From contig MCFE01000022.1 in the NCBI GenBank assembly GCA_002104905.1, positions 1-64,000 of the forward strand: a stretch of 64,000 bases of DNA, in the 5' to 3' direction. Positions 1 to 21,443 of this stretch are shown one piece after another (within the stretch, counting starts at the first letter, position 1; each line of letters opens with the position of its first letter). Position numbers and translations under genes: made by a program. Below the pieces are notes generated by a model. That model worked only from the letters and a program-made list of their open reading frames with translations, was not told the origin of the DNA and ran no database searches. Source of the DNA: Basidiobolus meristosporus CBS 931.73 (taxonomy: Eukaryota; Fungi; Basidiobolomycota).

Positions 1-184
1 TAAAGGCTCTGATTGGCTGAAATCCTTGAAATGCTAATTGGCCAGATTTGCCTAGTAAATTTGGCCAGTGATCGCCCAGAAATTCATCGCAGTTCCCCCA
101 GTCTACTGGCTATTCCAGCCACAATTCAGCTACCGCAAACCAGTATAACTTAGCTCAGATATATTCAGATTCTCACTTCCCAGG

Positions 185-303
185 CCTGGCTTTCCAGGAA
201 ACCTCTCTCAGACCTAGCTAACTAGGAAATATAGTACCAATCAGCTTCTCAACTCTTAGACCTGGCTTACCAGGAAGATATCTCTCAGACCTAGCTTTCT
301 AGG
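185..303. repeat. Array of four 14-bp imperfect palindromes (CCTRG-N4-CYAGG) in a two-copy ~77-bp degenerate duplication
   Basis: cctggctttccagg 185-198, cctagctaactagg 213-226, cctggcttaccagg 261-274, cctagctttctagg 290-303. ctctcagacctagct recurs at 205-219 and 282-296. Confidence 0.8.
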
Positions 304-390
304 AATAACTTCAGATTAACTTGGCTTCTTTAGATACTTGTCATAAGTAAATAAAGATTTCACCACTTGGTGACTTTCCTCCCCCCTAAA

Positions 391-730
391 TTAGTAAGTG
401 CCAAGAGACTGGATTATTGAAATCAACTGGGGTGTTGATAGGTGCATAAGATAATGAAAATTACATCATCAATCAGCTAATGTCTTGGCAATTGCTAAGT
501 GGTTAGGTATATCTCAGATGACTTATCACCTGGAAAGGCTTGGCAGATCAGTTGAAGATGGAATAACCATACAAAAACTGATCAGGTGTGTCAGTTAAAA
601 ATTGATTCTGAGATGGGACAAAATAGACTATAACTGGGATTAGTTATGTTTGGGTTAGGGAAAATCAGTTAGGGGACTAGATTTTCAAGTGGAGTAAAAT
701 TGGCTAAGTTTTAAATGTTGATGCACAGCA
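391..730 (-). mobile_element. Truncated LTR-like dispersed repeat (family B), inverted copy of 19892-20235
   Basis: The reverse complement of 391-730 aligns along its length with 19892-20235 (e.g. gcatcaacatttaaaacttagccaattttactcc; ccaagcctt(t/c)ccaggtgat(a/t)agtcatctgagat). It begins TGCTG versus TGTTG in the other copy. The region is free of CpG. Confidence 0.8.
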
Positions 731-1175
731 AGTTCTATGTAATTTAGTACAATACTACCTCAGAAACAAAGTTTCTGCCAAATCATTTACTTGGCAGATT
801 CAAACAAATAGTTGGCTTTTCTACTTTTTACCTTTAGCCATGTATACTTGGCACAATAAACATATTGCCATAATGATGACTTTCCTAACCCCTGACCAAT
901 TTGGAGTTCTTCCCTTCCCCCTAACCCATTGGTACTTGCCACTCCCCCTACCCTACCCTAAATTAGATATTTCTTGTAAAAGGGCCGCAGCAAGTCAACC
1001 CCCAAATTGGATATCAGATCTTAATGTACTTTGATCTCTAATAAGTCCAGCTGCCCTGATTGGGTTGGGGCTAAATCCGTTTTTAGCTCGATCCCTGAGA
1101 TTGATTGCTTGACGCAAGGTAACATATTATTAAACCGATGATTAATATGCGTATTAGAAGATTTGGGGGAAAGTC

Positions 1176-2560
1176 CTAATCAATATACCAATCCAAATGA
1201 AATGGGTGTAACAGATCCCAGTAATCTGGAATTTTAAGCAAATTTTTAACATTATCCCGAAATACCGTTATAGCAAGGGTATATAGCATTCGTAACAGTT
1301 TATTCAATTTTTGCCGGAAGAGCCTTGAATATCGCTTACAAATAGGCCAACTAGTGTCCTTGAATGCTATTCGGTGGTCAGTTGCCATAATATCACCCAA
1401 TAAGCACGTGGACCTGCTGGTGGAGGAAACCATAGTAGTATTATCACGGCAGTTATGGAAATTACCCTTGTTCTGGGTAAAAATCGAGAGCAGCAGCCTA
1501 TTTTAATATAAAGCTAGACCATTTTTTGGAGGCAGTCGTAACTGTCGGGTCCCAAAGATTAGCCCAACGTAGCATTCCGTACGTTTCCAGTAAGAAACAT
1601 AGTTAGTATTCTATTGGAAATGCAATCCAAGTCTATCGTTTGTAGGCATATTGTTAGTGCGAACCATCACCCTCGTAAGAAACCTTTGGGGCATTCAATA
1701 AATTTATAGATAGACCGTTTCTGGAAGCACGAAGATGCGTACAGCATCGCTCGTGTAGGAAGCATCTGAAGCGTTCCATTCGAAACGTGTGGCAAGCTCA
1801 TTATCTGAAGTTAATTAAGTAAGGCTACTATGCAATCAAAACGTTTTGCATCATTTTCCTCGTACAATAACAGTATCCTGAACATCCCGGCTGAGAACTT
1901 TGATAGAAGTGCCTAGCCTGGAGAATACGCATAGAACTTCAGTGCTCATGCAAGGTCTACAGTAGAATCTTCTTAACTGCCCTGTATTTGCGATCAGGGC
2001 TATCGAAATTGTTTTCGGCCGCTTTCGTAAACTGTGTCCCCCCACCATTTATGGGAAGGCACGTAGCAAAGGTAGTGATGGATCTGTTCATTGTTGAACT
2101 TCGAGTAAATAAGGTTCATGGCCCAGGCGCAGAAAGTCAGCGACATTCGGCATCACACCTAGGATTGGAATATCTGGACAGTCACTTCATGGCAAGCACC
2201 AATTGGTGTTTAGTTGGCAACACTTGGTTGTTGACGATCTGAAGCCTCACTTATCTCCCAACCATAAATCTACTTTTTATTTGTCCAATCACAGTTTGGC
2301 ATAATTGGGCTTCCGAAGTCAGGGAATCCAGATTGCTGGAACCCTTTATCACCCCGAAAAGCATGCTGCTGTATTTGTAGTAGACAGCGCAGTCATGCTA
2401 CCTCGCACCATCCAAAACAGAGTGTACAGCTTGTGCTCAGCAATACCACTTCACAATAGAATATGTCTTCAGTGGCATGGGAAAGCTGCCACAGTTGGCA
2501 TCCTTCAGCTATTTGCTATTGGTTGGTTAGTTGTTCGAGCAGACACTGACGCAAAGTAGC
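1176..2560 (-). pseudogene. Possible fragmentary or decayed multi-exon gene, product unknown
   Basis: Several short minus-strand peptide-like stretches (MSLTFCAWAMNLIYSKFNNEQIHHYLCYVPSHKWWGTQF; DNELATRFEWNASDASYTSDAVRIFVLPET) sit next to CTAAC...YAG intron-like signals. I could not build a stop-free model. Confidence 0.2.
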
Positions 2561-3293
2561 TGAGCTCGAGCGCTATTCGAAAGCCCAAGATGCAAAAGGA
2601 TATCAGATATAGTTCTTTACGGCGTGCTGAAGAATGCCAACTGAGATGCTTTTAAGCTACGTATGTATGCTAACTATAAATCAACCCCAAACAACTATAC
2701 AAACAGAGTATCTGCTTACTAAGCGCACAACACACTGTCCAGCAGATCTTCATATTTTGCAGCATGGTTAGTACCCATCACTCTATATGGGCTTTATATC
2801 ATTTTCTTGGTTCCTAACTGATTTTCCCACTAGCCTACCTAACCTAATCACATATTTTTAAATCAATTAGAAGTTGTCCCAGAGGCTACTGGCTTCTTAA
2901 TTTTGGATATAACCTATTACTAATTGAATATATTGATTTTGGAAAATATGATTTACTTCGCAATGACCGCCTACTTAATGTGGTCGACTGTTTCCATATC
3001 TAGTTCAATTTGCTTCTACCCACATTACCGAATCCATCACCATTTCATGTACAGGATGCCGAGATGGTGCGGTCGCAAGCACAGGGCATAGGCTCCGAGA
3101 ATGACACGGTAACCGGTACAAGGCGTAGACTCCGGACGGCTTATCACGCTAAATATGTGTAAATATATATACTGATTTGAATTGTAACCTTCCAATGGAA
3201 CGCGCCATATTGGGACTGAGCAAAGGCTCACAAAATTAAACCAGCCACGAAGTGCCGAGCGTATGCATCCATAATAAATTTATACCTCAAATC

Positions 3294-3396
3294 AGGCGAA
3301 GCTCTTCTTGATGGCCAATATCCATAGGCGAAGCTCTTCTTGATGGCCAATATCCATAGGCGAAGCTCTTCTTGATAGCCAATATCCATAGGCGAA
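3294..3396. repeat. 32-bp tandem repeat x3 plus a partial copy, upstream of the giant secreted gene
   Basis: Unit aggcgaagctcttcttgat(g/a)gccaatatccat, directly abutting with no spacers. Each unit has a CCAAT. It ends 360 bp before the ATG at 3756. Confidence 0.9.
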
Positions 3397-3703
3397 TTGC
3401 TCGGCCAACTACCTGAATTACAATACGATGGATGAAGGAAATTCGCGGTTAGGGCAAACTAATCACCCACAATAAAGGTATATCTTGGGGTGTTGGTTAC
3501 CACAATTGCTTGTGTAGCTACCCCGGTGTTGGCTACAGGATTTTGTGGAAAATGAGTTTGCATTGAATTGCCCATAGATAGCGTGAAAGTTTTACCCTCA
3601 AATCCTCCAAACCGAGGCTGTTGGGAAGCTCTAACAAAAAACCATCTCCCGCTGGAATTGCACGAGGTACAAAATGGAAAGTTCTTCATACCACGTGAAG
3701 GGA

Positions 3704-3712
3704 GTATATATG
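3704..3712 (+). promoter_or_regulatory. TATA-like box of the giant secreted gene
   Basis: gtatatatg about 45 nt upstream of ATG 3756. Confidence 0.45.
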
Positions 3713-3755
3713 GGCCTCAATAAGCTACATCATATACCGAGCTTATGTTGAGAAA

Positions 3756-6700
3756 ATGTTGCTCAATGTATTATTCATACTACTTTTAATAGCAAATCAG
3801 CTTGGCTTTACCTATCCCGCTCAAGTTACCCCCACCGTCAGTACTCTTGAAGTTGGTAGTATAATCAATAGTGATTATTTTACTAAACAAAACTCCCTTC
3901 GGCCAGTTGCCACATTAGCTGGAAGCTGTAATAGCAACAAGGTGACATGCCACTCAGAGGATGAAGTCAAGAAGTGTATACACGGAAAGTGGGTTATTGA
4001 AAAATGTCCATTTAAAAATGGCCAATACAAATGCTACGATTCGGATGGAGAAAAAGCGTACTGCAATTTACAATGGGCTGTCAAACACTACAGCACAGGA
4101 AAAACGACCGCGACAGTTACCGAAACTATTTTCAGCACGAAAAAAAGTGTCCGCACATACACAAAGTCCTGCAACGCAGGTGTATTTCAAAGTCAGTGTT
4201 TCAATAATAACCATGGCTTTATAGAGTGTGAAAACGGCATCGTGGTATATATCGCGTGCGATGCAGGGTGGTCGTGCACAACCGAAGGCGGAATCGGCTG
4301 TATGAACAATGTACCTCTGCCTAGTATCACCGGAGGCTCGGGTCCCTGCCAGCCTTATTCAATGAGCTGTGATTCAACGAATCCCAACATCTACACCTAC
4401 TGTGTCGATGGTGAAATGGTGGATTTTAATTGTCCGCGTGGACAGTTATGTGACCCTTTCTCTGTCACATCGAACTGCACAGCGCCACAGACGGCTTCGT
4501 CTTCGATTTCTTATCAACCGCTGGTATACACCACAACCCAAGAAACGAAGGTGGCTGTCTCCACAAAAGAGGTCAAGGTGACAAAGATCAATGAATGTTC
4601 AACAAACATAGAATGTGTCGATCCATTTCTTACAGGAGAACAACGAAAGTGCGTCAATGGCAGATTTGAAACAACTTGGTGTGCACACGGTGCAGTTTGT
4701 ATGGATTACTATGGATGGAATTACGACTGGAATATTCGCCAATGGGAAAGTGTCATCAAAACCGTTCAATGCCAATTATTCGTGGAAAGCAATGAAATTC
4801 CTAGTCCGAAACAAATATCGGCCACCTCTACAAGTAAATCCAGCAACTGTATCAGTGAATGCATAAACGGAATGATGAAGATATGTTACAATGGTGTAAC
4901 AACCATGAATGAGTGTGGTCATGGATATACCTGTCAAATGCAGGGAACTCAACCTATATGCGTTCCTCCACAGCCTTCACCGGTCATGCCAAATACAAAG
5001 GTAATTATTTCATCAACTTGCTTTAGTATACATCGATGTTAACATTGCATCCGATACAGAGAACGGAGAAGCCTCATCCCAGTGGCCATCACCACTCAGA
5101 GTCCAATAATTCCAGTCAGCATGACAGGAGTGATTCGAATGAAATAAGGAAGTCGATAGCTCCACAAACACCATCAACATTCATATCAGTAACCAGCTCT
5201 AGATCCAAACCAACAAAGGCACAAAAGAGTAAGTCCACTGATATCGTGTGCATTCCTGGCTGCGAAGATGAAAACGTGCCTCCATCGATCATTAAATGTG
5301 AAAATGGAATCCAGAAAAAATCAGCTTGCGGAGACGGATTCGTGTGTGCGATAGTAAATGGAGTACCATCCTGTAAGCAATTAAAACCGACACAATCACC
5401 ACCTCCACCATCACCAGCAGAATCCCTAAATAGGAAGACAAGCAAAGAACAACGCAGCCAAGCAGAAAAGCCTCATCAAAGTATAATGCCTAAAGTCAAA
5501 TGTGCTCCAGGCTGCGAAGCTGAAGGCGTATCTCCAGTGATAATTAAATGTAAAGATGGAAAACAGCAGAAATCCTCTTGCCAGGACGGATACATGTGCG
5601 CAATGGTGAATGGAATACCATCTTGTGAGCTTCCTATACCAACATTTTTTCCACCTCAACCATCCGGAACTTCAAGTGAGAAATCTAAAGAAACTGCAAA
5701 AATTACATCCAGTACACATCACGAGAAGTCTAAGCAATCTGTGAAGCCGAATTCCAGCAAGCCCCATGAAAGTTCTACAACAACCGAGAAGAACACTTCC
5801 AACGCACACCCTAAAACGTCACACAAAACTGATGAACATACTTCCGGTACGAATCATGAAAGGTCAAAGAAACTTGTGAAGCCTACGACCAGCGAGCGTC
5901 ATGAGAAGTCTACAGTAAGTGAGAAGCATACTTCCAGCGCGCATTATGAAATGCCACAGGGAGCTGAGAACCATACTTCAAGAGCGTATCAGGAGAAGTC
6001 AAGGAAACCTTTTAAGCTTGCATCAAGTGAGCTCTATAAAAAGTCTACAGCAACTGAGAAGCACACTTCTATCGCACATCATGAGAAGTCACGGGTAACC
6101 GCTAAGCATACTTCCAGTACTCATCATGAAAAGCCAAAGGAACCTATGAAGCCTACTCCAAGTGAAGCTCAGGAAAGGTCTACAGCAACTGAGAAGCACA
6201 CTCCCAGCGTACTTCATGTGGAGTCATTGGATACTGAGATGTACACTTCCAGTACACATCGTCAGAAGTCAAAGAAGCCTGTGAAGCCTGCGTCCAGCGA
6301 GCCTCATGAGAATTCAACAGCAAACAAGAAGCGTACTTCCAGTGCACATCATGAGAAGCCAAAGGAACAGGTACAGCCTACCTCCAGTAAAGCTCAGGAA
6401 AGGTTCACAGCAACTGAGAAGCACACTTCCAGCGCACTTGATAGGAAGTCATTGGATACTGAAATGCATACTACCAGTAAACATCGTGAGAAGTCAAAGA
6501 AGCTGGTGAAGTCTACTACAAGCGAAGCTCGGGAAAGGTCTACAGTAACTGAAAAACGCACTTATAGCGTACATCATGAGAAGTCACAGGGAACCGCGAG
6601 TCATACTTCCAGTACACAGCACCCTAAATCAAAGGAACAGGTGGAGCCTACTTTTAGCAAAGCTCAAGAAAAGTCCACAACAACTAAGAAACTCAGTCCA

Positions 6701-9700
6701 AGTGCACTTCATGAAAAGTCATTGGATACTGAGATGCATACTTCCAGTACACATCGTGAGATGTCAAAGGAACCTATAAAGCATACGTCCAGAGAGCCTC
6801 GTGAGAATTCAACAGCAATCAACAAGCGTACTTCCAGTACATCTGGTCAGAAATCACAGGCAACTGAAAGACGTAGTTCCAGCACAAATTATGAGAAGTC
6901 AAAGGAACCTGTGAAGCCTGATTCTAGCGAAGCTCAGGAAAAGTCCAAAGCAGCAGAGAAGCACACTTTTAGTGCACTTCATAGGAAGTCATTGAATACT
7001 GAGATGTATACTTCTAGCACACATAATGAGAAGTCCAAGGAGCCTGTGAGGCCTACTTCAAGCGAAGCTCAGGAAAAGTCGACAGCAAGTGAGAAGCACA
7101 CTTCCAGGGCACATCATGAGAGGTCATTGGATACTGAGATGCATACTTCCAGTACACATCGTGAGAAGTCAAAGGTACCTGTAAAGCCTACGTCCAGCGA
7201 GCCTCATGAGAATTCAACAGCAAACAACAAGCGTACTTCCAGTACAACCCATCCGAAGTCACAGGGAATTAAGAGACGCACTTCCAGCACACATTATGAG
7301 GAGTCAAAGGAACCTGTGAAGCCTACTTCAAGCGAAGCTCAGGAAGGTTTGACAGCAAGTGAGAAGCACACTTCCAGCGCACATCACGAGAAGTCAAAGG
7401 AACCTGTAAAGCATACGTCCAGCGAGCCTCATGTGAATTCATCAGCAAACAACAAGCGTACTTCCAGTACATCTCATCAGAAGTCACAGGGAACTAAGAG
7501 ACGTACTTCCAGCACACATTATGAGAAGTCAAAAGAACCTGTGAATCCTACTACAAGCGAAGTCCAAGAAAAGCCCACAACTACTGAGAACCACATTTCC
7601 ACCATACTTCATGAGAAGTCGCAGGAAACTAAGATGCATACTTCCAGTACACATCGTGAGAAGTCAAAGAAGACCTGTGAATCCTACTACAAGCGACGCT
7701 CATCAAAAATCGACAGCAACTGAGAAACACACCCCTATCGCACATCGTGAGAAGTCACCAGAAACCGCGAAGCATACTTCCAGCATACATCGTAAGGAGT
7801 CAAGGGAACCTGTGAAGCCTACTTCAAGCGAAGCTCAGGAGAAGTCGACAGCAAGTGAGAAGCACGCTTCCAGTGTACATCACAAGAAGTCAAAGGAATC
7901 TGCAAAGTCCACTTCAAGCGGCCTCATGAGAATTCATCAGCAACAACAAGCGTGCTTCCAGTACATCTCGTCAGAAGTCGCAGGGAACTAAGAGACGTAC
8001 TTCCAGTACACATTATGTGAAGTCAAAGAACCCGTGAAGCCTACTTCAAGCGAAGCTCAGGAGAAGTCGACAGCAAGTGAGAAACACACCTCTATCGCAC
8101 ATCGTGACAAGTCACAGGAACCCGCGAAGCATACTTCCAGCACACATCATGAGGAGTCGAAGGAACCTGTGAAGCCTACTTCAAGCGAAGCTCAGGAAAA
8201 GTCGACAACAAGTGAGAAGTATACTTCCAGCGCACATCACAGGAAGTCAAAGGAACCTGCAAAGCCCACTTCAAGCAAGCCTCATGTGAATTCATCAGCA
8301 AACAACAAGCGTGCTTCCGGTCCATCTCGTCAGAAGTCACAGAGAACTGAGAGACATACTTCCAGCACACATTATGAGAAGTCAAAGAAACCCGTGAAGC
8401 CTACTTCAAGCGAAGCTCAGGAGAAGTCGACAGCAAGTGAGAAGCACACTTCCAGCGCACATCACGAGAGATCATTGGATACTGAGATGCATACATCCAG
8501 TACACATCGTGAGAAGTCAAAAGCTCCTTTAAAGCATACGCCCAGCGAGCCTCATGAGAATTCAACCGCAAATATCCAGCGTGCTTCCAGTACATCTCGT
8601 CAGAGGTCACAGGGAACTAAGAGACGTACTTCCAACACACATAATGAGAAGTCAAAGGAATCTGTGAAGCCTGTTTCAAGCGAGCTCCATGAAAAGTCTA
8701 CAGCCACTGAGAAGCTCACTTCTGGCGCACATCAAGAGAAGTCGCGGGTAACCGCGAAGCATACTTCCAGTACACATTATGAGAAGTCAAAGGAACCTGT
8801 GAATCCTACTACAAGCGAAGTCCAAGAAAAGCCCACAGCTACTGAGAACCACATTTCCACCATACTTCGTGAGAAGTCGCAGGAAACTAAGATGCATACT
8901 TCCAGTACACATCGTGAGAAGTCAAAGGAGCCTGTGAAGCCTATGTCCAGCGAGCATCATCGAGAATTCAACAGTAAACAAGAAGCGTACTTCCAACACA
9001 TATCATGGTAAGTCACAGGGATCTGAGAAACGTACCTCTATCACATACCATGAGAAGTCAAAAGAACCTATGAATCCTGCTTCAAGTGAAGCTCAGGAAA
9101 GGTCTGCAGCAACTAAGAAGCACGCTTCCGGCACACCACATGAAAAGTCATTGGAAACTGAGATGCATACTTCCAGCACACATCATGAGAAGTCAAAGAA
9201 GACTTTGAAGCCTACTTCAAGCGACGCTCATCAAAAATCGACAGCAACTGAGAAACACACCCCTATCGCACATCGTGAGAAGTCACCAGAAACCGCGAAG
9301 CATACTTCCAGCATACATCGTAAGGAGTCAAGGGAACCTGTGAAGCCTACTTCAAGCGAAGCTCAGGAAAAGTCGACAGCAAGTGAGAAGCACACTACCA
9401 GCGCACATCACGAGAAGTCACCGGAAACTAAGAAACGTACCTTCAGCACACATCATGAGAAGTCAAAGGAACCTGTGAATCCTACTACAAGCGAAGTCCA
9501 AGAAAAGCCCACAGCTACTGAGAACCACATTTCCACCATACTTCGTGAGAAGTCGCAGGAAACTAAGATGCATACTTCCAGTACACATCGTGAGAAGTCA
9601 AAGGAGCCTGTGAAGCCTATGTCCAGCGAGCATCATGAGAATTCAACATTAAACAACAAGCGTACTTTCAATACATATCATGGCAAGTCACAGGGAACTG

Positions 9701-12700
9701 AGAAACGTACCTCTAGCACATACCATGAGAAGTTGAAGGAACCTGTGAAGCCTACTTCCGGTGAAGTTCATGAAAAGTCTACAGCAACTGAGAAAAATAT
9801 TTCTAGCGTATATCATGAGAAGTCACGGGAAACCGCGAAGTATACTTTCAGTACACATTATGAGAAGTCAAAGGAACCTGTGAAGCCGACTTCCAGTGAA
9901 ATTCGGGAAAGGTCTGCAGCAACTGAGAAACACACTTCCAGCGTACTTCATGAGAAGTCGCAGGGCACTGAGAAACGTACTTCCAGCGAGCCTCAGGAGA
10001 AACCTATAGCAACTGAGAAGCATACTTCCAGTTTACATCATAAGAAGGCAAAAGAGCCTGCACAGCCTACATCCAGCGAGCTTCATAAGAGGTCTACGAT
10101 AACTGAGAAACATATTTCTGGCGCACACCATGCGAAGTCGCAGGAAACTGGGCCTGTAAAGCATACTTCCAGCGAACCTGATGAAATTTCTACAGCCACA
10201 GAGAAGCTTAATTCCAGCGTGCCCAATCGCACCGACTCTAAGCAAACCGAGAAATCTCACCCCAGCAAACCTCAGCTCCCTGAATCCCGGAAGGCGGTCA
10301 AGGTTCACTCCAGCATGCATCATAGCTCAGAGTCGAAGGAAACAGAGAACCCCAACTTCAGCCAACATCACCACCCTGAGTCCAAGGAGACTAATATATC
10401 GCATTCAAGCGGGCTTCAGCGCACTGACTCCCAGGAAACTAAAAAGCCTCACACAAGCGATCCTTATCACCCTGAGACCAAGGAGACTAAGAAGCCTCAT
10501 TCCAGCGATCACCATTACCCTGACTCTGAAAAGAGTACGTCAGCCAGTGATCATAAGAAATCAAAGGAAACAAAGAAGCCAGAACGCAGTAAGCAACATA
10601 AGAAGTCACTGAAGACTGAAAAGTCGAAGGAAACTCAGAAACATATCTTCAGTACCTATGAAGAGAAGTCGAAAGATCCTGCGAAGACTACTTTTAGGGA
10701 ACATCATGAAAAGCCTACAGCAACTGAGAAGTCTCATTCTAGCAAGTACTACGAAAGATCCCATGGCGCTGTAAAGCATACCTCCAGCAACCAGCATCAT
10801 AAATCGAAGACGACTGAGCAGCCTTATTCCAGTGAGCAGTATCACCCCAATAACAAAGAATCTGAGATGCTTCGTTCCAGCATACGTCATTACTTAGAGT
10901 CCAAGAAGGATGAGAAGCCTCACCCGAGCGACACCAACGAGACACAGAAGCCTCATTCCAGCGAGTACCGTCGCACTGGCACCAAGGAAACCGAGAAGAT
11001 TCAATCCAGCAAGTCTCACCTCCTTGAGTCCAAGAAAGCTGAGACACTTCACTCTAGCGTACATCACTACACTGACTCTAAGGATACTAAGAAGCCGCAT
11101 TCTAGCCAACATCACCACCCTGAGTCAAAGAAAACCAAGAAGCTTTATTCTAGCGAGCATCATGGCATTGACTCTAAGCAAACCGAAAAGGCACACTCCA
11201 GCGATCATTACCACTCCAAGTATAAGGAGACTAATAAGCCTCATTCACGCGAGCATCATCGTACTGGCTCCAAGCAAACTAATAAGCCTCACCCCAGCGA
11301 GCATCACTACCCTAAGACCAAAGAAGCTGAGAAGTCTCATTCCAGTGGCCATCATCACGCTGGCTCTAGGGTGACTTCGAAGTCTGATTCCATCGAGCAT
11401 CACCGCTCAGGATCCAAAAAGACTGAGAAGCCTCACTCCAGCGAGCATCATCGCACAGATTCCCGCAACGAACGTCATAAGAAATCCAAGGAATCTGAGA
11501 CGACTCATTCCAGCAAGAATCATCGCACTGACTCAAAGGGTACTTACAAACCTCATTCAATTGAGCATCATCGTACTGACTCCAAGGAAACAGGGAAGCC
11601 TCACTCAAGTGAGCATCACTCTGAGTCAAAGAAGGCTGAGAAACCTAATACTAGCGAGCATCATGGCTCTGAGTCGAAGGAGGCTGAAAAGGCTCACTCA
11701 AGTGAGTGCCGTCGCAGTGATTCTGAGGAGACTAAGAAGCCTCATACTAGTGAGTCCCATCACTCCGAGTATAAGGAAACGGGGAAGTCTCGCTCAAGTG
11801 AACACCATCACACTTTGTCTGAAAAAACCGAGATGCCTCACCCAAGTCATTATCACCGCACATCGTCTAAGGAGACGAAGAAGCCTCACTCTAGCAAGCA
11901 TCATCACAGTGAGTCTAAAGAAACCGAGAAGTCTCATTCAAGCACGCATCATAGCACAGAGTCTAAGGAAAGTTATAAGCCTCACTCAAACGAGCATCAC
12001 CGCTCTGCGTCTAACAAGACCGAGAAACCTCATACTAGCGAGCACCATGGTGCTAATTCTAAGGAAACAGGCAGGGTTACTGAACCCGTAGTCACCAATA
12101 AGCACTCTGTTACTATAGAGGCTTCGAAGGAAGTAACAATTCGGCGTGATACTTCAATGGAGGTTACCATTACCGGACCGACAGTTACAGTCACTGAGCC
12201 AACAATAACTTACAAACATTCCGTGACTGTCAAACCATCCGACGTGGTGACCATCCAACCCGAGACTTCAGTTGATGTAACAATCACTGAGCCAACGGTA
12301 ACTGTTACTGAACCTACTGTGACATATAAGCAATCCGATACTAAGGAGGATTCGAAAGAAGTAACAGTTCACCATGATACTTCAATGGAAGTTACCATTG
12401 CCGGACCAACAGTTACCATCACTGAGCCAACATTAACTTACAAACATTCCGTGACTGTTGGACCATCTGACGTGGTGACCATTCAACCCGAGACTTCAGT
12501 TGATGTAACAATCACTGAGCCAACGGTAACTGTTACTGAACCTACTGTGACGTATAAGCAATCCGATACTAAGGAGGATTCGAAAGAAGTAACAGTTCAC
12601 CATGATACTTCAATGGAAGTTACCATTGCCGGACCAACAGTTACCATCACTGAGCCAACAATAACTTACAAACATTCCGTGACTGTTAGACCATCTGACG

Positions 12701-15700
12701 TGGTGACCATTCAACACGAGACTTCAGTCGATGTAACAATCACTGAACCGACTGTTACTGTAACTAAACCCACAGTAGCTTATACGCACTCGATTACGTC
12801 CGAAGAACTCAAGAAGGTGACTATTCGACACCGTAAGTCGATTGATGTTACCGTGACTGAGTCAACTCTGACATACATACATTCGGTAACCGAAAAACCT
12901 CCTAGAAAAGTGACGATTCAACCGGATACTTCAGCCGACGTGACAGTTACCGAACCAACTCTCACAGTAACTATACCTACGATAACCTTCAACTACTCAG
13001 TTACAAAGGGGGTTTCAAAAGAAGTCACAATTCAACATGAAACAATTGTAGAAACCACTGTTGCTAAGCTAACAGTAACTATCCCTAAGCCAACAGTAAC
13101 CTATAGGCACTATGTAACTGAAAGGTCACTGAACGAGCTGACCACCCGACACAAGTTTTCAGGCAGTTTAACAATTACCAAGCCTACAGTAACCTATAAG
13201 CACTCTGACAAGAAGGATATCTCAAAGCAGGCGACCATTCAGCGGCTTAAATCCATTGATACAACTGTAACTGAACTTACAGCAACCATCACAGAACCAA
13301 CAGTAACCTATAAGAATACTAATACCGAAAAAAAGTCCAGCAACGTAACAATCCGACGTAGAACTTCAGTCGATATAACAATCGTGGAACCGACAGTGAC
13401 TATAACGGAATACGGGGGCTCAGTCCGTACTATTGTTGACCGAACTATCACCGTTCAGCCTACTGTTTCTGTCCAAAGTACTACTCACACCGTTACCATT
13501 ACCAAGACTGATGGCAAGATTCACACTATCGTTGATGGCACCGTCACTGCGCATCCTTCTGTTTCTGTTGAGAGCAGTGCTCGCACCGTTGCCGCTACCG
13601 AGACTGATGGCAAGATTCACACTGTCGTTGATGGCACTATCACTGTGCATCCTACTGTTGCTGTCGAAAGCAGTGCTCGCATCGTTACCATTACCGAGAC
13701 TGATGGCAAGGTTCACACTATCGTTGATGGCACCGTCACTGCGCATCCTTCTGTTTCTGTCGAGAGCAGTGCTCGCACCGTTGCCGCTACCGAGACTGAT
13801 GGCAAGATTCACACTGTCGTTGATGGCACTATCACTGTGCATCCTACTGTTGCTGTCGAAAGCAGTGCTCGCATCGTTACCATTACCGAGACTGATGGCA
13901 AGGTTCACACTATCGTTGATGGCACCGTCACTGCGCATCCTTCTGTTTCTGTCGAGAGCAGTGCTCGCACCGTTGCCGTTACCAAGACTGATGGCAAGAT
14001 TCACACTGTCGTTGACCGCACTGTCACTATTCAGCCCACTGTTTCTGTCGAAAGCGTTGCTCACGTTGCTATGATTACCGAGACTGATGGCAAGATTCAC
14101 ACTGTCGTTGATGGCACTATCACTGTGCATCCTACAGTTGCTGTCGAAAACAGTGCTCGCACCGTTACCATTACCGAGACTGATGGCAAGGTTCACACTG
14201 TCATTGACCGCACTGTCACTGTTCAGCCCACCGTTTCTGTCGAAAGTGGTTCTCACATTGTTACGATTACTGAGACCGATGGCAAGATTCACACTGTCAC
14301 TGTGCAACCTACTGTTTCTGTCGAAAGCAGTGCTCGCACCGTTACGATTACCGAGACTGATGGCAAGATTCACACTGTTGTTGATGGCACTATTACTGTG
14401 CATCCTACTGTTTCTGTCGATAGTGGTGTTCACATTGTTACAAGTACCGAGACTGATGACAATGTTCACACTGTCATTGGCCGCACTACCACCGTTCAGC
14501 CCACTGCTTCTGTCGAAAGTGGTGCTCACATCAATACCATTACTGAGACTGATGGCAAGATTCATACTGTCGTTGGCCGCACTGCTACTGTTCAGCCCAC
14601 CGTTTCTGTCGAAAGCGGTGCTCACACTGTTTTCATTACCGAGACTGATGGCAAGGTTCACACTGTCATTGACCGCACTGTCACTGTTCAGCCTACTGTT
14701 TCTGTCGAAAGTGGTACTCACATTGTTACGATTACCGAGACTGATGGCAAGATTCACACTGTCATTGACCGCACTGTTACTGTGCAACCTACTGTTTCTG
14801 TTGAGAGCAGTGCTCGCACCGTCACCATTACCGAGACTGATGGCAAGATTCACACTATCGTTGATAGCACCGTCACTGTGCATCCTTCTGTTTCTGTCGA
14901 GAGCAGTGCTCGCACCGTTGCCGTTACCAAGACTGATGGCAAGGTTCACACTGTCATTGACCGTACTATCACCGTTCAGCCCACTGTTTCCGTCGAAAGC
15001 GGTGCTCGCACCGTTATTATTACTGAGACTGATGGAAAGGGTCACACTGTCGCTGATCGTACTGTCATCGTGCAGCCTGCTGTTTCTGTCGAGAGCGGTG
15101 CTCACACCGTTTCCATTACCGGAACTTATGGTAAGGTTCACACTGTCGTTGACCGCACTGTCACTGTGCAGTCTACTGTTTCCGTCGAAAGCAGTGCTCG
15201 CACGGTAATCACAACCGAAATTGATGGAAAGGTTGTTGACCGCAATGCCACTGTTGAGCCCACAATGTCAATTGAAAGCGGCGATCGCACTGTTACTGTT
15301 ACTGAGACAGTTGGCAAGGCTCACACTGATCGTACCGTTACTGTTCAGCCTACTATGTCTATTGAAAAGGGCACTAGTTCTGTTACTATTACTGCGGCTG
15401 ATGGCATAGCACCTACTGCGATTGACCGCAGTGTGACTCTCAGGCCTATGTCTGTCGAATGTGGCGCTCGCACTGTTACTGTTACTGTTATTGAGACTGA
15501 TGTCAAGACTCTCACTATCGCTGATCAACCCTACGTATCCATGGAAACTGGAGCCTACACCGTCACTATTACTGAGACTAATGGCAAGGCTCGCGCTGTC
15601 ATTGTGCAGCCCACTGTATCAGTCGAAAGCGCTCTCTGTACTGTTACCGTTACCGAGACTGATGGTAATGGTCAAACTGTCAATGACCGCACTATTAGTA

Positions 15701-16517
15701 TCGAACCCACGGCTTCTGCTGAAGCAGGTGCTCCCAATGTAACTGTCACTGATATTGATGATGAGATTCACACCGTCATTGTGCAGCCTACTGCTTCATT
15801 TGGAAGTGGTGCGCGCATTGTTACTGTAACAGAGGCCAACGGCAATCTTCATACTATTATTGACCGCACCGTCACTGTCCAACCTACTATTTCTGTCGGA
15901 AGTGGTGCTTATACCTTTAGTGTTACCGACACTAACGGCAAGACTCACGCTGTTATTGACCGCACTGCTACTGCACAGTCTACTGTATCGGCTGGAAGCG
16001 GTGTTCATTCTGTTGCTGTTACCGAAACTAATGGCAATGCTCGTGACGTTACCGCTCAGCCTACTATTTCCATAAAAGGAGGTGCTCATGCAGTTTCCAG
16101 AGTTACTACCAAATCTGCCACGACAAGCGGTAAGCACATTTTACAAGGCTCAATCCTCACAGCCCTCTGACATAATAATTATTCTTAGATCTCCCAGTTT
16201 CCTCCGATACCACATGTGCTCCTGGATGTGCTACTACTACTCTGGCTGTTTCTGTAACTGATATCAATCCGGTTACAGTTACGGCTATTCAAACTGTTAC
16301 TTTACACAACGTTCATACCGTCACTGTTACCCGGGCTGAGAAACAAGTGAAGACCACTCAACGTGGGGTGTGCACCGATGGCCAATATAGTTGTCTAGAA
16401 TCTGGTACTTCACCAGTCTTTTTCGTCTGCGTCAATGGACGTCTGATTCAGAACCATTGTGCTAGTGACACAGTTTGCAAAACTCTTGGTCAATCTATTA
16501 TTTGTGACTGGGAATGA
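3756..16517 (+). CDS. Giant (~4,200 aa) secreted repeat protein with eight CBM19-like chitin-binding Cys modules; five single-base indels in this sequence
   Basis: Signal peptide MLLNVLFILLLIANQLGFTYP. In-frame introns 5001-5059 and 16130-16188 join ORFs 3756, 5036, 9070 and a last exon ending CTDGQYSCLESGTSPVFFVCVNGRLIQNHCASDTVCKTLGQSIICDWE* (TGA 16515-16517). Seven more C-x(n)-C-x-NG-x6-C-x2-G-x2-C modules lie in 3920-5630. Frame breaks at about 7672, 7920, 7943, 8028 and 8963. AATAAA at about 16629. Confidence 0.85.
5680..12065 (+). repeat. Coding His/Ser/Lys/Glu/Thr-rich repeats (HEKSKEPVKPTSSEAQEKST type, then HSSEHHRTDSKETxKP type)
   Basis: Recurrent catacttccag/gagaagtca motifs every ~55-60 nt. 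Long near-exact internal duplications: 7690-7860 with 9220-9390, and 7530-7660 with 8790-8920 and 9460-9600. Confidence 0.9.
12148..16060 (+). repeat. Coding Thr/Val repeats: a 76-aa (228-bp) VTITEPTVT unit, then a 32-aa (96-bp) TVTITETDGKIHTVVDGTITVHPTVSVESSAR unit
   Basis: gatacttcaatgga recurs at 12148, 12376 and 12604 (228-bp period). actgatggcaag recurs at ~96-bp spacing from ~13507, with a 192-bp higher-order unit. Confidence 0.9.
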
Positions 16518-16749
16518 TTCCCATAAACGTTTAGTCAACGTTTGTTCGTACCCTACAAATAGACTGCCAACCTGGTTGACAATTCAGCTATTCAATAGCC
16601 AATAGACCGAAAACCTATTCTTTATTAAATAAACTGAAGCCGTATGAATTTTCTTCACACTACAAAGTAATTGCATAGTATATCTAGACAATTGGGGCAT
16701 TGGAATCCTAAACACAAGCCTGTTGCACAATTTCTTATTCTATCACAGA

Positions 16750-18570
16750 TATATTACTAATGGTTATAAATGGAAAACCACCTAACTCTTGGGCCAATGT
16801 CCTCTATATGGAGTAAACAATTCTAATACTCAAATTCAGCAGAAGTATCTATTGGGATGCATATGGCTGAAATCATGCAGCTTTCTGCACAGAGCTCTGG
16901 ACCTCCAACTACGGCTTTTTAAGGAATGCTCAGCAGCGTGCGTTGGTGGCACCGGTGGCTGTGGGCATTTGCTTTGCTGCCCTGAGTATAGAAGTAGCAT
17001 GCTTGGAATCAATATCGCTTTTGGTTGCCATTCTGTGGGTGCTATTTGTGGTAGGTCCAGGGGTAATTGAAGTATATATTGAGGGTGCAGGTGGCTGTGA
17101 GAAATCACTCTGCTGGCCTGAATGCGTGGGTGCCACTAAATAGCAGACACACCTCAATCCAAGTATGCACTAACCTATACAAGTCCCTTCACTATATATT
17201 AACAATGGTCCCAACACTACACTCTACAAATATAATCATTAACATGCACCATTCAACAAGTGTTGTCACCTTAACATCCTTCATGCATCCCTTTGATGAT
17301 AACCTTTTGGATCTATACCATTGTGAGCTCACAGGTTCCCATATATTCTGGTCTTCTGCCAGCAGAGCAAAGTCTAGCACTTTATCTGCCTGTCATTGCA
17401 ATAAGTTCACTTTCTTTGATACTGTACTTGAAAAAGTGTGGCAGCCTCTTGGTATGCAAACTCCTGTTTTAAGATCTCACCACCAATTTTGATCAATGTT
17501 AGACATCTTGACATTAGTACTTTCCTCATCAGTGGGATTTTCACTCTGCTTGCATTGGAGGATGTGGAGGATGTGTGACAAGAAGTGCCTCTCTCTAAAA
17601 GCCATCAGCCTCTTTGAAGAACTCTTTCACTGGCTGCACTTTGGTCACTTGTGAAAACAGCAATTGTCTAGTTGGTAGTTGCTCCTGGCTATTATGAGAC
17701 TCAGACTGACCTTGGCTGACAGCACTAGTTGCTACAAATTGCAGCTTTTGTCTTATGTTTTTCTGTCATTGCTTTTGGTGAACTCTCTTTCAATTGCTTT
17801 TACCTCTACTACTGCCAGGACCTTCACTGCTAATCAGACATTGTGACTCTTGTTTTAGACTGTTTACTCCTTGATATATTGTAGCTAAGCCGTGGTTTCT
17901 GGCTGCTTTTCTCTTGCTAGCACTCTTCCCACCACCTGACACTTCCTTGCTTTTTGCTTAGAGCTCTCTGCATTAAGTGTGATAGGTTCTTGAGGTACCT
18001 ACTACTTTCCTGCTGTGGTACTCTTTCTCATGTGTTTCTCATAGCTTCAAGTATGCTTAAATACATCTGAGCTCACTGATAATGTCCTAAAATCTACTTG
18101 CTTGTTTTAGTGCAGGATGTTGCAGATGGAACAGACCATGTACAGCCTGCCAGGCTTTTAGTTCATGAGGGCCCCAAGGTGTACTGGCTTCTGGATGATT
18201 GTACACTAGAGTGCTAATGGTTTCTTGCATGTTAGCCCACCCATCATCACTGCACTCAAGAGCATCTTCAGTCTTCATGTTCCCTGGTTCTTGGGCTGTA
18301 GTATATGTTGAAGTCTCTCCCATCCATGCTTTTTTAGGTATTCCTGTAGGCTTAATTATTGGATACTATTATTGTATCTCACAATCTGCACACTGCTCCC
18401 ATGTAGTCATATTGTGCTATGGCTTAATCCTGGTCTGTTTTGTGGAGCTGATTAAATTTCTTGGTTGCATCAATGACATTGAATTTTCTACTAGGGATAT
18501 TGATTGCTCTCTGTGCATTATCAACCCATCCTGTCTCTTTAGTAATTTCTGCCTCTTTAGACTGTTATAT
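16750..18570. mobile_element. Highly degenerate transposon-derived sequence, family not determinable
   Basis: Stop-riddled in all frames. CpG nearly absent from ~17130 onward. Contiguous with recognisable LTR relics. Only a weak gag-like impression on the minus strand. Confidence 0.3.
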
Positions 18571-18571
18571 C

Positions 18572-19890
18572 TATTGTGAATTTTTTAATTACACCTATAT
18601 ACTCATTGAGCTTAGTCACTTAGATCTTGTCTACAAATCTTGGAAAACTTGGATCAAATTCCTTATTGGAATTTACTTGGAGTACTTTTACCAAATCATC
18701 AAGTACCCAGAGCATAAATTTTTCAAAGTTGTCCAAACAGCCTCCAACTTGACACACATACTGTTGTGACCTTCCTCAAAATATTTTATGTGTTTTTTCT
18801 GCCAAATCTATGCCAAGATATGAATACTGCTTTACATTCAGTATATAATCAAGTGAAAACAGCATTGTCTCTTTCTCCTCCCAGTCACTTCCTATATCTC
18901 CAAGCTCTTATAGCATGTAATGAGCCCCTTGCTGTCTCTCTCTGCAATGGCTAATACTGTTAGTACTGGAATCTTTCCCTCCATTCAAAAGTTGGATTGA
19001 TCAAACTACAAAGTTCAGAAGGTGAAGATGAAGATGTTGCTGCAGGAAAGAAGCCTTTAGTATATTGTCATGAGAGAATAATCCCCCCCCCCTCAAGCAA
19101 CAGGTGAAGAAATCTTAAAGTACCCAAAGAAAGAAGAAATTTCCTTTATTGCATTTGCATTAATGGTAAAGACAACTTGCTGATTCAATGTTGTAGAACA
19201 AAAATGGTAAAAAATGCTGGGAAGACACCTCTCAGTCATTTTCAGTGTCTAAGAAGATGTATATTATACAGAATCTCTTAGTACACAGATTTTCCTAGGA
19301 GAAGAAATGAAAATCTAATTAACCAGATACCTCTGTTAGTAGATGAGATGAATCAGCAAGTATACACACCACTTATGAAGATGTGACAGTTACTCTCTTG
19401 TATAGCCTGAAAGACAAGCATCAGGGCCTTGTATCTGCCTTAGGGTCCAGTAGTGCAGATCTGAGCTTATGTCACATATATGGAAGGCTACTAGCTGAAG
19501 AATTAAGAAATTGAAGCACCCATTTAAAGGAAACAGAAAATGCCTTGTGAGCAATGCTAACCACCAAATAAGGTAGCCAAGACCCTCTAAAGCCAACATC
19601 AATCTTTCTTACAGCTACTGAAAATGGAAAGGGCTCACATCAGAGCAGTGCATAAAATGACAGCTAATGTGCAAAAAAGTTTAAATATAGAATTGCTGCA
19701 ACCACTAAAGATAAAATATTTGCATCTGCACCTAATATGACCCTAAACAGGAATTCTTGGATGTGGTACATTACTTCTGGAGCATCTCAACACCTTATGC
19801 ACCAAAAGAACTTTTACCTAATTTGAAAAAATACCAATCAAGAAAGTTTTTATGGGAAGCAACAAAATACTTGATGCAGTTTAATAGGCA
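18572..19890 (+). mobile_element. Older Ty1/copia relic: 5' LTR (18572-18915), PBS, decayed gag and protease
   Basis: 18572-18915 is a diverged copy of the LTR at 21112-21443. It is followed by tgtaatgagccc (PBS variant) and a leader matching 21444-21520. WYITSGASQHLM at ~19765 matches the copia protease W-x-x-DSGAS-x-HM motif with the catalytic Asp lost. Confidence 0.7.
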
Positions 19891-19891
19891 G

Positions 19892-20298
19892 TGTTGTGCA
19901 TCAACATTTAAAACTTAGCCAATTTTACTCCGTTTGAAAATCTAGTACCCTAACTGCTTTTCCTAACCCAAACATAACAAATCCCAGTTACAGTTTATTT
20001 TATCCCACCTCAGAGTCTATTTTTAGCTATCACACCTGATCTATTTTCAAATGGTCATTACGTTATCAACCTATCTGCCAAGCCTTCCCAGGTGATTAGT
20101 CATCTGAGATCTATCCAACCACTGTGCAGTTGCCAAGACATCAGTTGGTTGATGATGTAATTTTCATTTATCTTATGCACCTATGAACACCTGAATTGAT
20201 TTCAATCAATCCAGTCCCTTGGTGCTTACTAATTCAACTTGATCAGAAAAGTATAAATAAAGTTTACTGAACCTTTTGGTTTAGTGTGTGTCTCAACA
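19892..20298 (+). mobile_element. LTR-like repeat (family B), TGTTG...CAACA
   Basis: Starts TGTTG at 19892. gtataaataaag at ~20251. CAACA ends at 20298. 19892-20235 matches 391-730 in reverse. No TSD recognised, so the right end is uncertain. Confidence 0.6.
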
Positions 20299-20799
20299 AA
20301 ATTAAGATTCTGTCTCAGCAAAAATAAGAATCCAACAATTCAGTTCTAGTTTCTATCCAAGCCTAGTATATCTAGCACTCCAAAGAACACCAAGCCTAGC
20401 CTGCCTAGCAAACAAATATCATTGTCTTTATAGCCAACCCAGCTATATCCAAGACCAATATTAGATCAGAATCTTTCTGCTAATATTTCCACCACTCTGA
20501 CAATTCTAAGATTCTGCACTTAATTGTCCCTTTGGTTCAGTTAAGCCATTCAAGAGCTTTATTACACTTTCTCTTGGATACAACAGGCAGCTATCCAAGT
20601 AAACCTTATAAGTAATGAAGGAAGCAACATGCTTACCTTCAAAAAAGTACTCTATCTACCAGAAATAGGCAGAAACCTATAATCAGTATACAAGGCCACT
20701 GCAGAAGGATTTAGTTACAGTTTGATAGCTCTGCATGCAGGATCACTGATCAAAATAGCACCCATATTGCCCCAGGTAGAAGAGATGAGAATCTATTCA

Positions 20800-21111
20800 A
20801 TCTAACTCATATTCCATCATAGGAGGAAGCCAATGTAAGTAACTTAAATGAAGAGACATCAATGCTTTGGCACCGGAGACTTGGACATATCAATTTGGTT
20901 ATTTGAGCAAAATGATCAAAAATTGACTAATTTACTGAATACATGGATATCCCAGCTAATATGGGGCACTGTGAAGCCTGCATATATGGGAAATAAGCCA
21001 GATAACCATTCAAGAGCTTGGGGCCAATCAAAACTAAGAGAAAGTCAGGTCTAATCTACTAAGATCTATGTGGACCTATGCAAGATTTGTCCTCAAGTGC
21101 AAAGCAATTAC
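20800..21111 (+). pseudogene. Possible Ty3/gypsy gag relic into which the copia element inserted
   Basis: FGTGDLDISIWLFEQ resembles the gypsy capsid F-x-G-x(3)-D-V-x-x-W-L motif. The surrounding frames are broken. Confidence 0.3.
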
Positions 21112-21443
21112 TGTAGTAAAAGTTTGTAATTCAACCTAAATACTCACCTAACTCAGTCACTTAGATCATTACCTACAAAATCCTAGTGAATACTGACCAA
21201 ATTCCTTGTCAGGATTTACTTAGAATATTTACCCAGAACATGAAAATTCTCAAAGTTGTCCAAAAGCCCCAAACTTTGTACACATGTTCGTGGGACCTCC
21301 CTTAACCTATTCTATGTGCTTGTTATGCCAAGACCAGGTAAAAGCATAAATACTACTTTTACATTCACTACATCATTAGGTGAAAGCCACTTAATCTACT
21401 TGTTCTCCCAATCACTTCCAATATCTCCAAGACTCCTACAACA
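21112..21443 (+). repeat. 5' LTR of the copia element
   Basis: Aligns with 24665-24996, roughly 89% by hand count. Followed by the PBS. Confidence 0.92.

Follow-up and report, generated by a model that had tools for sequence, protein, structure and literature searches.

A candidate giant chitin-tethered, mucin-like protein gene of Basidiobolus meristosporus with six-cysteine modules at both ends

In insect intestinal mucins, six-cysteine chitin-binding domains are arranged around mucin domains, the C-terminal domain is divergent, and the mucin segments are believed to set the distance between one chitin-binding domain and the next on chitin microfibrils (PMC3065741). Secreted mucin-like proteins with several chitin-binding modules are already known; what is unusual is the architecture described here, which belongs to a family specific to Basidiobolus. 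It is encoded on the plus strand at positions 3756-16517 of a 64,000-nt stretch of DNA from Basidiobolus meristosporus CBS 931.73 (assembly GCA_002104905.1, contig MCFE01000022.1, positions 1 to 64,000), hereafter the window. The region reads as a single three-exon gene, whose product would consist, in order, of a signal peptide, seven six-Cys modules, about 2,130 amino acids (aa) of His/Ser/Lys/Glu repeats, about 1,350 aa of Thr/Val repeats and an eighth six-Cys module. We put the probability that this is an intact gene for a chitin-tethered protein acting, by analogy, like a peritrophin-mucin at roughly 0.5.

Six long open pieces were found across three frames of this region (open frames 3756-5039, 5027-7720, 7545-9008 with one stop, 8938-16167 and 16179-16514, all on the plus strand). 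Read from the sequence, they join into the following gene model.

3756 to 5000, plus strand: exon 1, 415 codons, an ATG-first open frame with the putative signal peptide (about aa 1-22) and modules M1-M5
5001 to 5059, plus strand: putative intron 1, 59 nt, GTAATT..ACAG, phase 0
5060 to 16129, plus strand: exon 2, about 3,690 codons once indels are corrected
16130 to 16188, plus strand: putative intron 2, 59 nt, GTAAGC..TTAG, with a CTGAC branch-like site, phase 1
16189 to 16517, plus strand: exon 3, 109 codons, with a CAPGC half-motif, module M8 and the stop TGA at 16515-16517

A branch-like TTAAC lies about 20 nt before the 3' end of intron 1, and without splicing of this intron the frame ends at a stop at 5040. 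Two genomic runs of 2016 from one sample (X1 and X2) were available as Logan contigs, which drop minor variants. At a word depth of about 200, they carried 83-85% of the sampled words of 4900-9100, and their contigs were compared with the window over 3650-9100. Contigs spanning 4892-5518 differed from the window in at most one letter (5416 A>G, in X2 only) and confirmed the DNA of intron 1, indicating that the frame break there is not an error and needs splicing. Removal of intron 2 brings the complete Cys module M8 in frame at the end of the protein. The corrected length is 415 + 3690 + 109 = 4,214 aa. Searches and folding were carried out exon by exon and piece by piece, and the residues summed from the separate pieces numbered 4,209 (462 kDa). 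All elements listed for this gene by the original prediction were found where it had placed them, and its two introns proved canonical and in phase.

Every piece of exon 2 lying between indel sites is open. Compared with neighbouring repeat units, exon 2 contains five single-base indels, all between 7670 and 8965.

7675, plus strand: extra base relative to the repeat consensus and to the paralogous copy 9139-9361
behind 7919, 7941 and 8028, plus strand: three missing bases, which jointly restore the frame; X1 and X2 contigs alike have G, A and A here
8961, plus strand: extra C; X2 contig record 14 is without this base

The original prediction depended on such indels not being real, which most likely holds for four of the five. 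The version of the window at 7919, 7941, 8028 and 8961 was present in no X1 or X2 contig, and the X2 contig past 8961 matched window positions 9101-9138 exactly, so that it belongs to this locus and not to a paralogous unit. Being contradicted by independent genomic contigs, these four indels are most likely assembly errors. The remaining site, 7675, did not follow: the sole call that left the base out came from the same X2 contig aligned to the paralogous stretch, and one X1 contig (depth 122.8) covered the site gap-free and agreed with the window.

Because the contigs leave the indel at 7675 uncorrected, this copy could be broken, that is, an allele or pseudogene whose indels are real in the haplotype or strain and which yields no full-length product. 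The contigs correcting 7919-8028 had a word depth of about 100-120, compared with 200-240 nearby, and this half depth could mean two haplotypes of which Logan kept one. Scattered substitutions between the window and the 2016 contigs, mostly transitions (for example 3713 G>A, 3899 T>G, 3917 A>G, 7117 T>C, 8096 C>T and 8869 G>A), fit the same explanation; together with the half depth, they could reflect either heterozygosity or residual assembly error. However, all five indels fall in a single 1.3-kb stretch with recent internal duplications, a typical site of long-read polishing failure, whereas the other 11 kb or so are open; 7.2 kb of this, on the downstream side, form one uninterrupted frame that finishes in an in-phase intron and an intact module. 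Positions 7610-7834 and 9139-9361 are about 95% identical (about 10 differences and one gap in 224 nt), marking a recent internal duplication and a His-rich array that is still reshuffling. Since the five indels are confined to this recently duplicated stretch, polishing failure is the likelier cause, and we consider a broken allele unlikely, all the more as no contig carries the window version at the other four sites.

A third intron at 7656-7716 (GTGAGA..ACAG, 61 nt), which would rescue the frame at 7675, was considered but is probably a coincidence: its two ends simply follow the usual repeat consensus (CGT GAG .. ACA GCA), which many other units share, and it was therefore rejected.

Two further results, beside the uncorrected base at 7675, weigh against an expressed and intact gene. 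A sequencing-run search found no RNA run containing the stretch, and dN/dS (the ratio of nonsynonymous to synonymous substitution rates) over fifteen of the 32-aa repeat units was 0.67 in frame versus 0.71 and 0.82 in the wrong frames, which does not set the coding frame apart; being uninformative, this ratio was not counted as a sign of coding constraint. Searches of the literature on Basidiobolus adhesive, CBM19 and transcriptomes retrieved nothing concerning this protein. Taken with the open exons, the in-phase introns and the corrected indels, the gene is nevertheless most likely real and intact. The case carries a warning, in that residual single-base long-read errors gather in duplicated coding repeats and can make giant genes resemble pseudogenes.

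The flanks at 1-3700 and 16600-21200 are gene-poor, and their G+C content drops to 36-42%. The upstream flank contains no open reading frame (ORF) reaching 90 aa, and the downstream flank none exceeding 141 aa over 4.7 kb.

The N-terminus (MLLNVLFILLLIANQLGFTYPA..) is the sole strongly hydrophobic stretch of the protein (KD19 hydropathy 1.97; threshold >1.6), and it aligns with the leaders of the relatives described below. From its hydropathy and its conservation in a B. ranarum relative, it was judged a predicted signal peptide. The C-terminus (..GQSIICDWE) is the polar end of M8, and the KD19 maximum of exon 3 is 1.14; a tail of the glycosylphosphatidylinositol (GPI) type is not formed by such a polar end. 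The alternative end obtained without splicing (..GKHILQGSILTAL) is too short for a GPI tail. No transmembrane helix was detected by the KD19 scan, no GPI attachment signal was recognised, and no catalytic Pfam domain, including GH18, was detected in any scanned piece. The non-enzymatic, secreted-type and anchorless character proposed in the original prediction is thus borne out, as are its six-Cys modules of chitin-binding type at both ends (seven N-terminal and one C-terminal) and the approximate sizes of its repeat regions, which were measured at about 2,130 aa for His/Ser/Lys/Glu and 455 + 898 aa for Thr/Val.

Exactly eight six-Cys modules were identified. Exon 1 encodes five of them, exon 2 carries another two near its beginning, and the last one lies at the C-terminal end. 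A hidden Markov model (HMM) built from the eight found no further copy in the six frames of the window. The modules share the pattern C-x3-8-C-x7-11-C-x8-10-C-x5-8-C-x7-23-C with conserved C-x-[ND]-G and C-x2-G-[YFW]-x-C cores, and aromatic residues are enriched at four positions of their alignment. In the following lines, bit scores for CBM_19 (PF03427) and CBM_14 (PF01607) are to be read against the Pfam gathering cut-offs of 20.1 and 22.1 bits, respectively.

3927 to 4064, plus strand: M1 (Cys58-Cys103), CBM_19 24.0 bits alone and 20.9 bits in context
4170 to 4301, plus strand: M2, six Cys, 57.9 bits with the module HMM, of whose eight source sequences M2 is itself one
4347 to 4478, plus strand: M3, six Cys, CBM_14 17.0 bits, sub-threshold
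4596 to 4772, plus strand: M4, with a long Trp/Tyr-rich insert ahead of the last Cys that is conserved in the relatives P0001 and P0002
4848 to 4961, plus strand: M5, a short form with a CxxxC start, missing from the B. ranarum relative P0001
5249 to 5374, plus strand: M6, CxxGC type
5501 to 5626, plus strand: M7, CxxGC type
16371 to 16505, plus strand: M8, C-terminal, CBM_14 17.3 bits and CBM_19 12.9 bits, both sub-threshold

M1 was the only module of this protein above the CBM_19 cut-off, and the CBM_14 cut-off was reached by none of the eight (M8 and M3 came closest). M2 and M4 gave weak Pfam matches to unrelated families only, and M5-M7 gave none. The label CBM19-like, which the original prediction had attached to all eight modules, is therefore only partly supported: M1 passes, M8 stays sub-threshold and the other six do not match PF03427. 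The picture broadened when 29 modules of the family, taken from this gene and five relatives, were each scanned singly. At E<=1, CBM_19 was matched by seven of them (best E 7.7e-6) and CBM_14 by six, and every other Pfam family gave at most three matches. One module of the paralog P0005 also exceeded the CBM_19 cut-off.

With the 29 modules as alignment, AlphaFold modelled M8 as a small five-strand beta domain with a predicted local distance difference test score (pLDDT) of 92.9. The top Foldseek matches of this model were the CBM14 of human chitotriosidase (5hbf and 6so0; query TM-score (TMq) 0.49-0.63, 27-28% identity), together with Der p 23 and tachycitin (TMq 0.63). Among the top 14 VIA-align matches, seven were chitin binders of the CBM14/peritrophin type, namely Der p 23 (Z 4.8), two Avr4 structures (3.8), Blo t 12 (3.6), CHIT1 CBM14 (3.5), Der f 23 (3.4) and tachycitin (2.7). 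It is the recurrence of chitin binders among these neighbours that forms the signal, and, judging from the model, the modules are plausibly chitin-binding.

Several points speak against chitin binding. Seven of the eight modules lie below every Pfam cut-off, and their Cys spacing departs from the peritrophin-A pattern. The structural matches of M8 are individually weak (Foldseek E>=0.4, Z<=5.1), as is expected for a 50-aa domain. The same scores would suit modules that are generic disulfide knots for protein contacts or for another glycan, in a matrix or biofilm protein whose working part is a beta-solenoid or a His-rich metal-binding stretch. Fusexin and SIX effector domains matched M8 about as well as CBM14 in VIA-align. 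Moreover, a search of PDB sequences with the 29-module profile matched nothing beyond a C..G..C......C half-motif, located in a Cys-rich protein of eggshell, and this was not taken as homology. On the other hand, CBM_19 and CBM_14 are the most frequent families over the 29 modules, and chitin-binding domains dominate the structural neighbours of M8, which makes generic knots an improbable account. We class the modules as a divergent six-Cys family bordering on both CBM14 and CBM19, and they probably bind chitin.

A lone CAPGC occurs in exon 3 at 16215-16229, identical to the start of M7 and close to the CIPGC of M6; 47 Thr/Val-rich residues lie between it and M8. Possibly an insertion once divided a CxxGC-type module here and left this motif behind.

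The two repeat regions separating M7 from exon 3 comprise four arrays.

5651 to 10128, plus strand: region A, 15-aa units in 45-aa (135-nt) super-units, e.g. KHTSSTHHEKSKEPV / KPTSSEAQEKSTASE
10129 to 12069, plus strand: region B, 16-aa (48-nt) units, e.g. KPHSSEHHRTDSKETE, 14% His
12070 to 13434, plus strand: region C, 76-aa (228-nt) units, 24% Thr and 15% Val
13435 to 16128, plus strand: region D, about 28 units of 32 aa (96 nt), e.g. VDRTVTVQPTVSVESGAHTVTITETDGKIHTV

Regions A and B form the His/Ser/Lys/Glu repeats (5651-12069). Tandem Repeats Finder (TRF) reported periods of 45 and 135 nt in region A, where His recurs at lags of 15, 30 and 45 aa, and periods of 48 and 96 nt in region B. 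Region A consists of 16-20% Ser, 13-14% Thr, 13-14% Lys, 12-13% Glu and 8-9% His, with zero Cys. Over both regions, the ranges are 16-20% Ser, 10-14% Thr, 13-15% Lys, 12-13% Glu and 8-14% His, Ser and Thr together make up about 30-33%, and a single Cys is present. A 1,036-aa part of this His-rich region has an isoelectric point (pI) of 9.45 and a net charge of +52 at pH 7 and +186 at pH 5. Such a spacer would be disordered and O-glycosylated in the manner of a mucin, as far as its composition tells.

Within the Thr/Val repeats (12070-16128), the 76-aa units account for 455 aa and the 32-aa units for 898 aa; the sequence has 21-24% Thr, 15-18% Val and a pI of 5.6. The TRF periods were 228 nt (92% matches) for region C and 96 nt for region D. 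A minus-strand ORF at 13420-15141 (573 aa) was rejected as a gene, the 96-nt repeat unit being merely stop-free in that frame. When ten 32-aa units of region D were folded from the single sequence with AlphaFold2, the model showed four strands per unit with a pLDDT of 82 and a predicted TM-score (pTM) of 0.81. In VIA-align, this model matched CsgA (Z 18.8), SufB/SufD (about 17), the two-partner secretion (TPS) adhesins EtpA and HMW1 (14.9), a beta-helical antifreeze protein (14.6), Fap2 (14.3) and the Candida glabrata adhesins Awp3b (13.8) and Awp14 (12.8). Region D is therefore predicted, from the model, to stack as a beta-solenoid rod. Two facts tell against this prediction: confident models were obtained in two of five cases only, and repeat sequences are prone to predictions of the beta-solenoid type. 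Foldseek against the PDB returned nothing for the model at E<=1e-3. Word-based protein searches with the Thr/Val region at two query lengths gave no relatives, and searches of the ESM Atlas by features and by shape were blank, results whose meaning is limited by the low complexity of the region and by length windows. The curli protein CsgA, the TPS adhesins and the Awp adhesins among the neighbours would also fit a protein in which the solenoid, rather than chitin-binding modules, is the working part.

The relatives of the protein bear on both its design and its distribution. An exhaustive phmmer search with exon 1 against 1.84 billion representative proteins (E<=1e-3) returned five relatives in total, every one from Basidiobolus.

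B. ranarum K7432_016645: 37% identity, E 1.6e-63, the best public match
B. ranarum K7432_012838
B. meristosporus CBS 931.73 ORX89337.1 (partial)
B. meristosporus CBS 931.73 ORY04490.1 and ORY04489.1: named 'CBM19 domain-containing' in UniProt

The family was thus found only in Basidiobolus, and the gene described here has no public protein model. In the alignment of exon 1 with four Basidiobolus relatives, the leader was kept and all Cys of M1-M4 were invariant. The B. ranarum protein of 37% identity has the leader, M1-M4, M6-M7 and the start of the His repeats in common with this gene. In the B. ranarum relative P0001, the site of intron 1 is intron-free and M5 is lacking, but close counterparts of the M6/M7 type occur at 417-464 and 514-561. 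Three of the five relatives continue into His/Ser/Lys/Glu repeats, with P0002 and P0004 likewise showing modules followed by His repeats. All three break off inside these repeats, where the contig itself ends either directly or after no more than about 100 bases, and the full design has consequently been hidden in public assemblies so far.

The models of K7432_016645 and K7432_012838 (L001:812-2888 and L003:3692-7127) both end in His repeats near a contig end. In K7432_016645, the final five residues do not continue the frame of the one long exon (812-2701), which suggests an artefact of annotation.

Taken together, these features would describe a giant secreted glycoprotein of about 460 kDa before glycosylation. 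Its seven N-terminal modules and one C-terminal module, knotted by disulfides, would hold chitin non-covalently. Between them, the long Ser/Thr-rich spacer with Lys, Glu and His would gain positive charge steeply below pH 6, and the roughly 1,350 aa of Thr/Val units would stack into a beta-solenoid rod. With no covalent anchor, the multivalent end modules might retain the protein on chitin fibrils in the wall or spore coat of the fungus itself, and the middle might either cross-link chitin fibrils or project as a hydrated, charged, pH-dependent surface layer. As a role, such a wall or matrix tether is put forward tentatively, at odds a little short of even.

Beside a wall cross-linker, the original prediction had named a spore glue as an example, with the adhesive droplet of capilliconidia as a candidate location; one end of the protein would then sit on arthropod cuticle chitin and the other on the spore wall. 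A two-ended layout without an anchor does fit a bridging molecule, the family is confined to a genus known for adhesive capilliconidia, and cationic, disordered stretches rich in Lys and His occur in animal wet adhesives. However, arthropod chitin lies beneath a waxy epicuticle, so that direct chitin-mediated attachment is less obvious. The genome also seems to carry several paralogs built alike, which a wall or matrix family of general function would explain equally well or better, and the literature and sequencing runs, when searched for expression, proteomic, binding and localisation data, yielded none that would support a bridge between two chitin surfaces, the glue role or the droplet location. 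We therefore regard the spore glue as quite unlikely.

The steep rise in positive charge from pH 7 to pH 5 and the resemblance of the M8 fold to Avr4 and CHIT1 CBM14 bear on another proposal, a coat for gut passage. Here, the modules would mask the fungus's own wall chitin from chitinases of host or prey, as Avr4 (CBM14) does against plant chitinases, and the His-rich brush would turn polycationic in the acidic stomach. Basidiobolus is a herptile gut associate (PMC10964425, PMC7466969), in line with this idea. The proposal is pure inference, however, and the protein is far larger than known chitin-shielding effectors; a gut-passage coat seems a doubtful explanation.

Compared with these, a chitin-binding tether of the fungus's own wall or matrix remains the preferred reading. 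If the modules bind chitin, the protein would represent a type of fungal wall or surface component that has not yet been described, mucin-like and tethered non-covalently at both ends. The life cycle of Basidiobolus relies on sticking to arthropods and on passage through the vertebrate gut, and the genus occasionally infects humans. On the boldest view, Basidiobolus would have independently evolved a counterpart of the peritrophin-mucins, in which genus-specific, half-megadalton, two-ended chitin tethers form a coat of acid-switched His brush and solenoid rod for arthropod sticking, stomach survival or both; as a whole, this scenario is speculative and rather unlikely.

Among known systems, the insect intestinal mucins and peritrophins, such as HaIIM86 and the Trichoplusia ni intestinal mucin (T. 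ni IIM), come closest in layout. Like them, the Basidiobolus protein combines a putative signal peptide with several six-Cys domains flanking repetitive Ser/Thr-rich spacers; its C-terminal domain is unlike the upstream ones, and it has neither a membrane anchor nor an enzyme domain. Unlike them, it is fungal, with no detectable sequence homology past the weak module match, and it is about five times larger. Its spacer is rich in His, Lys and Glu, whereas that of insect mucins is rich in Thr and Pro, and a predicted rod of the beta-solenoid type is added. The Cys spacing given above also differs from the insect pattern CX13-15CX5CX9CX12CX7C (PMC3065741), and the CBM14/peritrophin-A spacing CX13-20CX5-6CX9-19CX10-14CX4-14C is matched by none of the eight modules despite their six Cys. 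The shared peritrophin-mucin architecture (signal peptide, several modules, repetitive spacer, no anchor) is accordingly to be read as a functional analogy and not as family membership.

The modules also recall the CBM19 of fungal GH18 chitinases, as at the C-terminus of yeast Cts1, in that the Pfam cut-off is cleared by M1 and by a module of one paralog. Unlike the CBM19 linked to GH18, they occur without GH18, a customary but not obligatory partner of CBM19, most are sub-threshold, and they form a seven-plus-one array instead of a single C-terminal tail. The CBM14 binders (CHIT1 CBM14, tachycitin, Avr4 and Der p 23) provide the nearest solved folds to the M8 model (TMq 0.49-0.63, Z 2.7-4.8, 17-28% identity, each match being insignificant on its own), whereas the Pfam CBM_14 scores of at most 17.3 bits stay below the cut-off of 22.1. 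Finally, GPI-anchored fungal adhesins (Als, Flo, Epa and Awp) are likewise large secreted proteins with long Ser/Thr-rich tandem repeats, and the predicted beta-helix resembles the A-domains of Awp3b and Awp14 (Z 12.8-13.8). Unlike these adhesins, the Basidiobolus protein lacks a GPI signal as well as any ligand domain of the PA14 or Ig-like kind, and its attachment to the wall is likely to be non-covalent, through the end modules.

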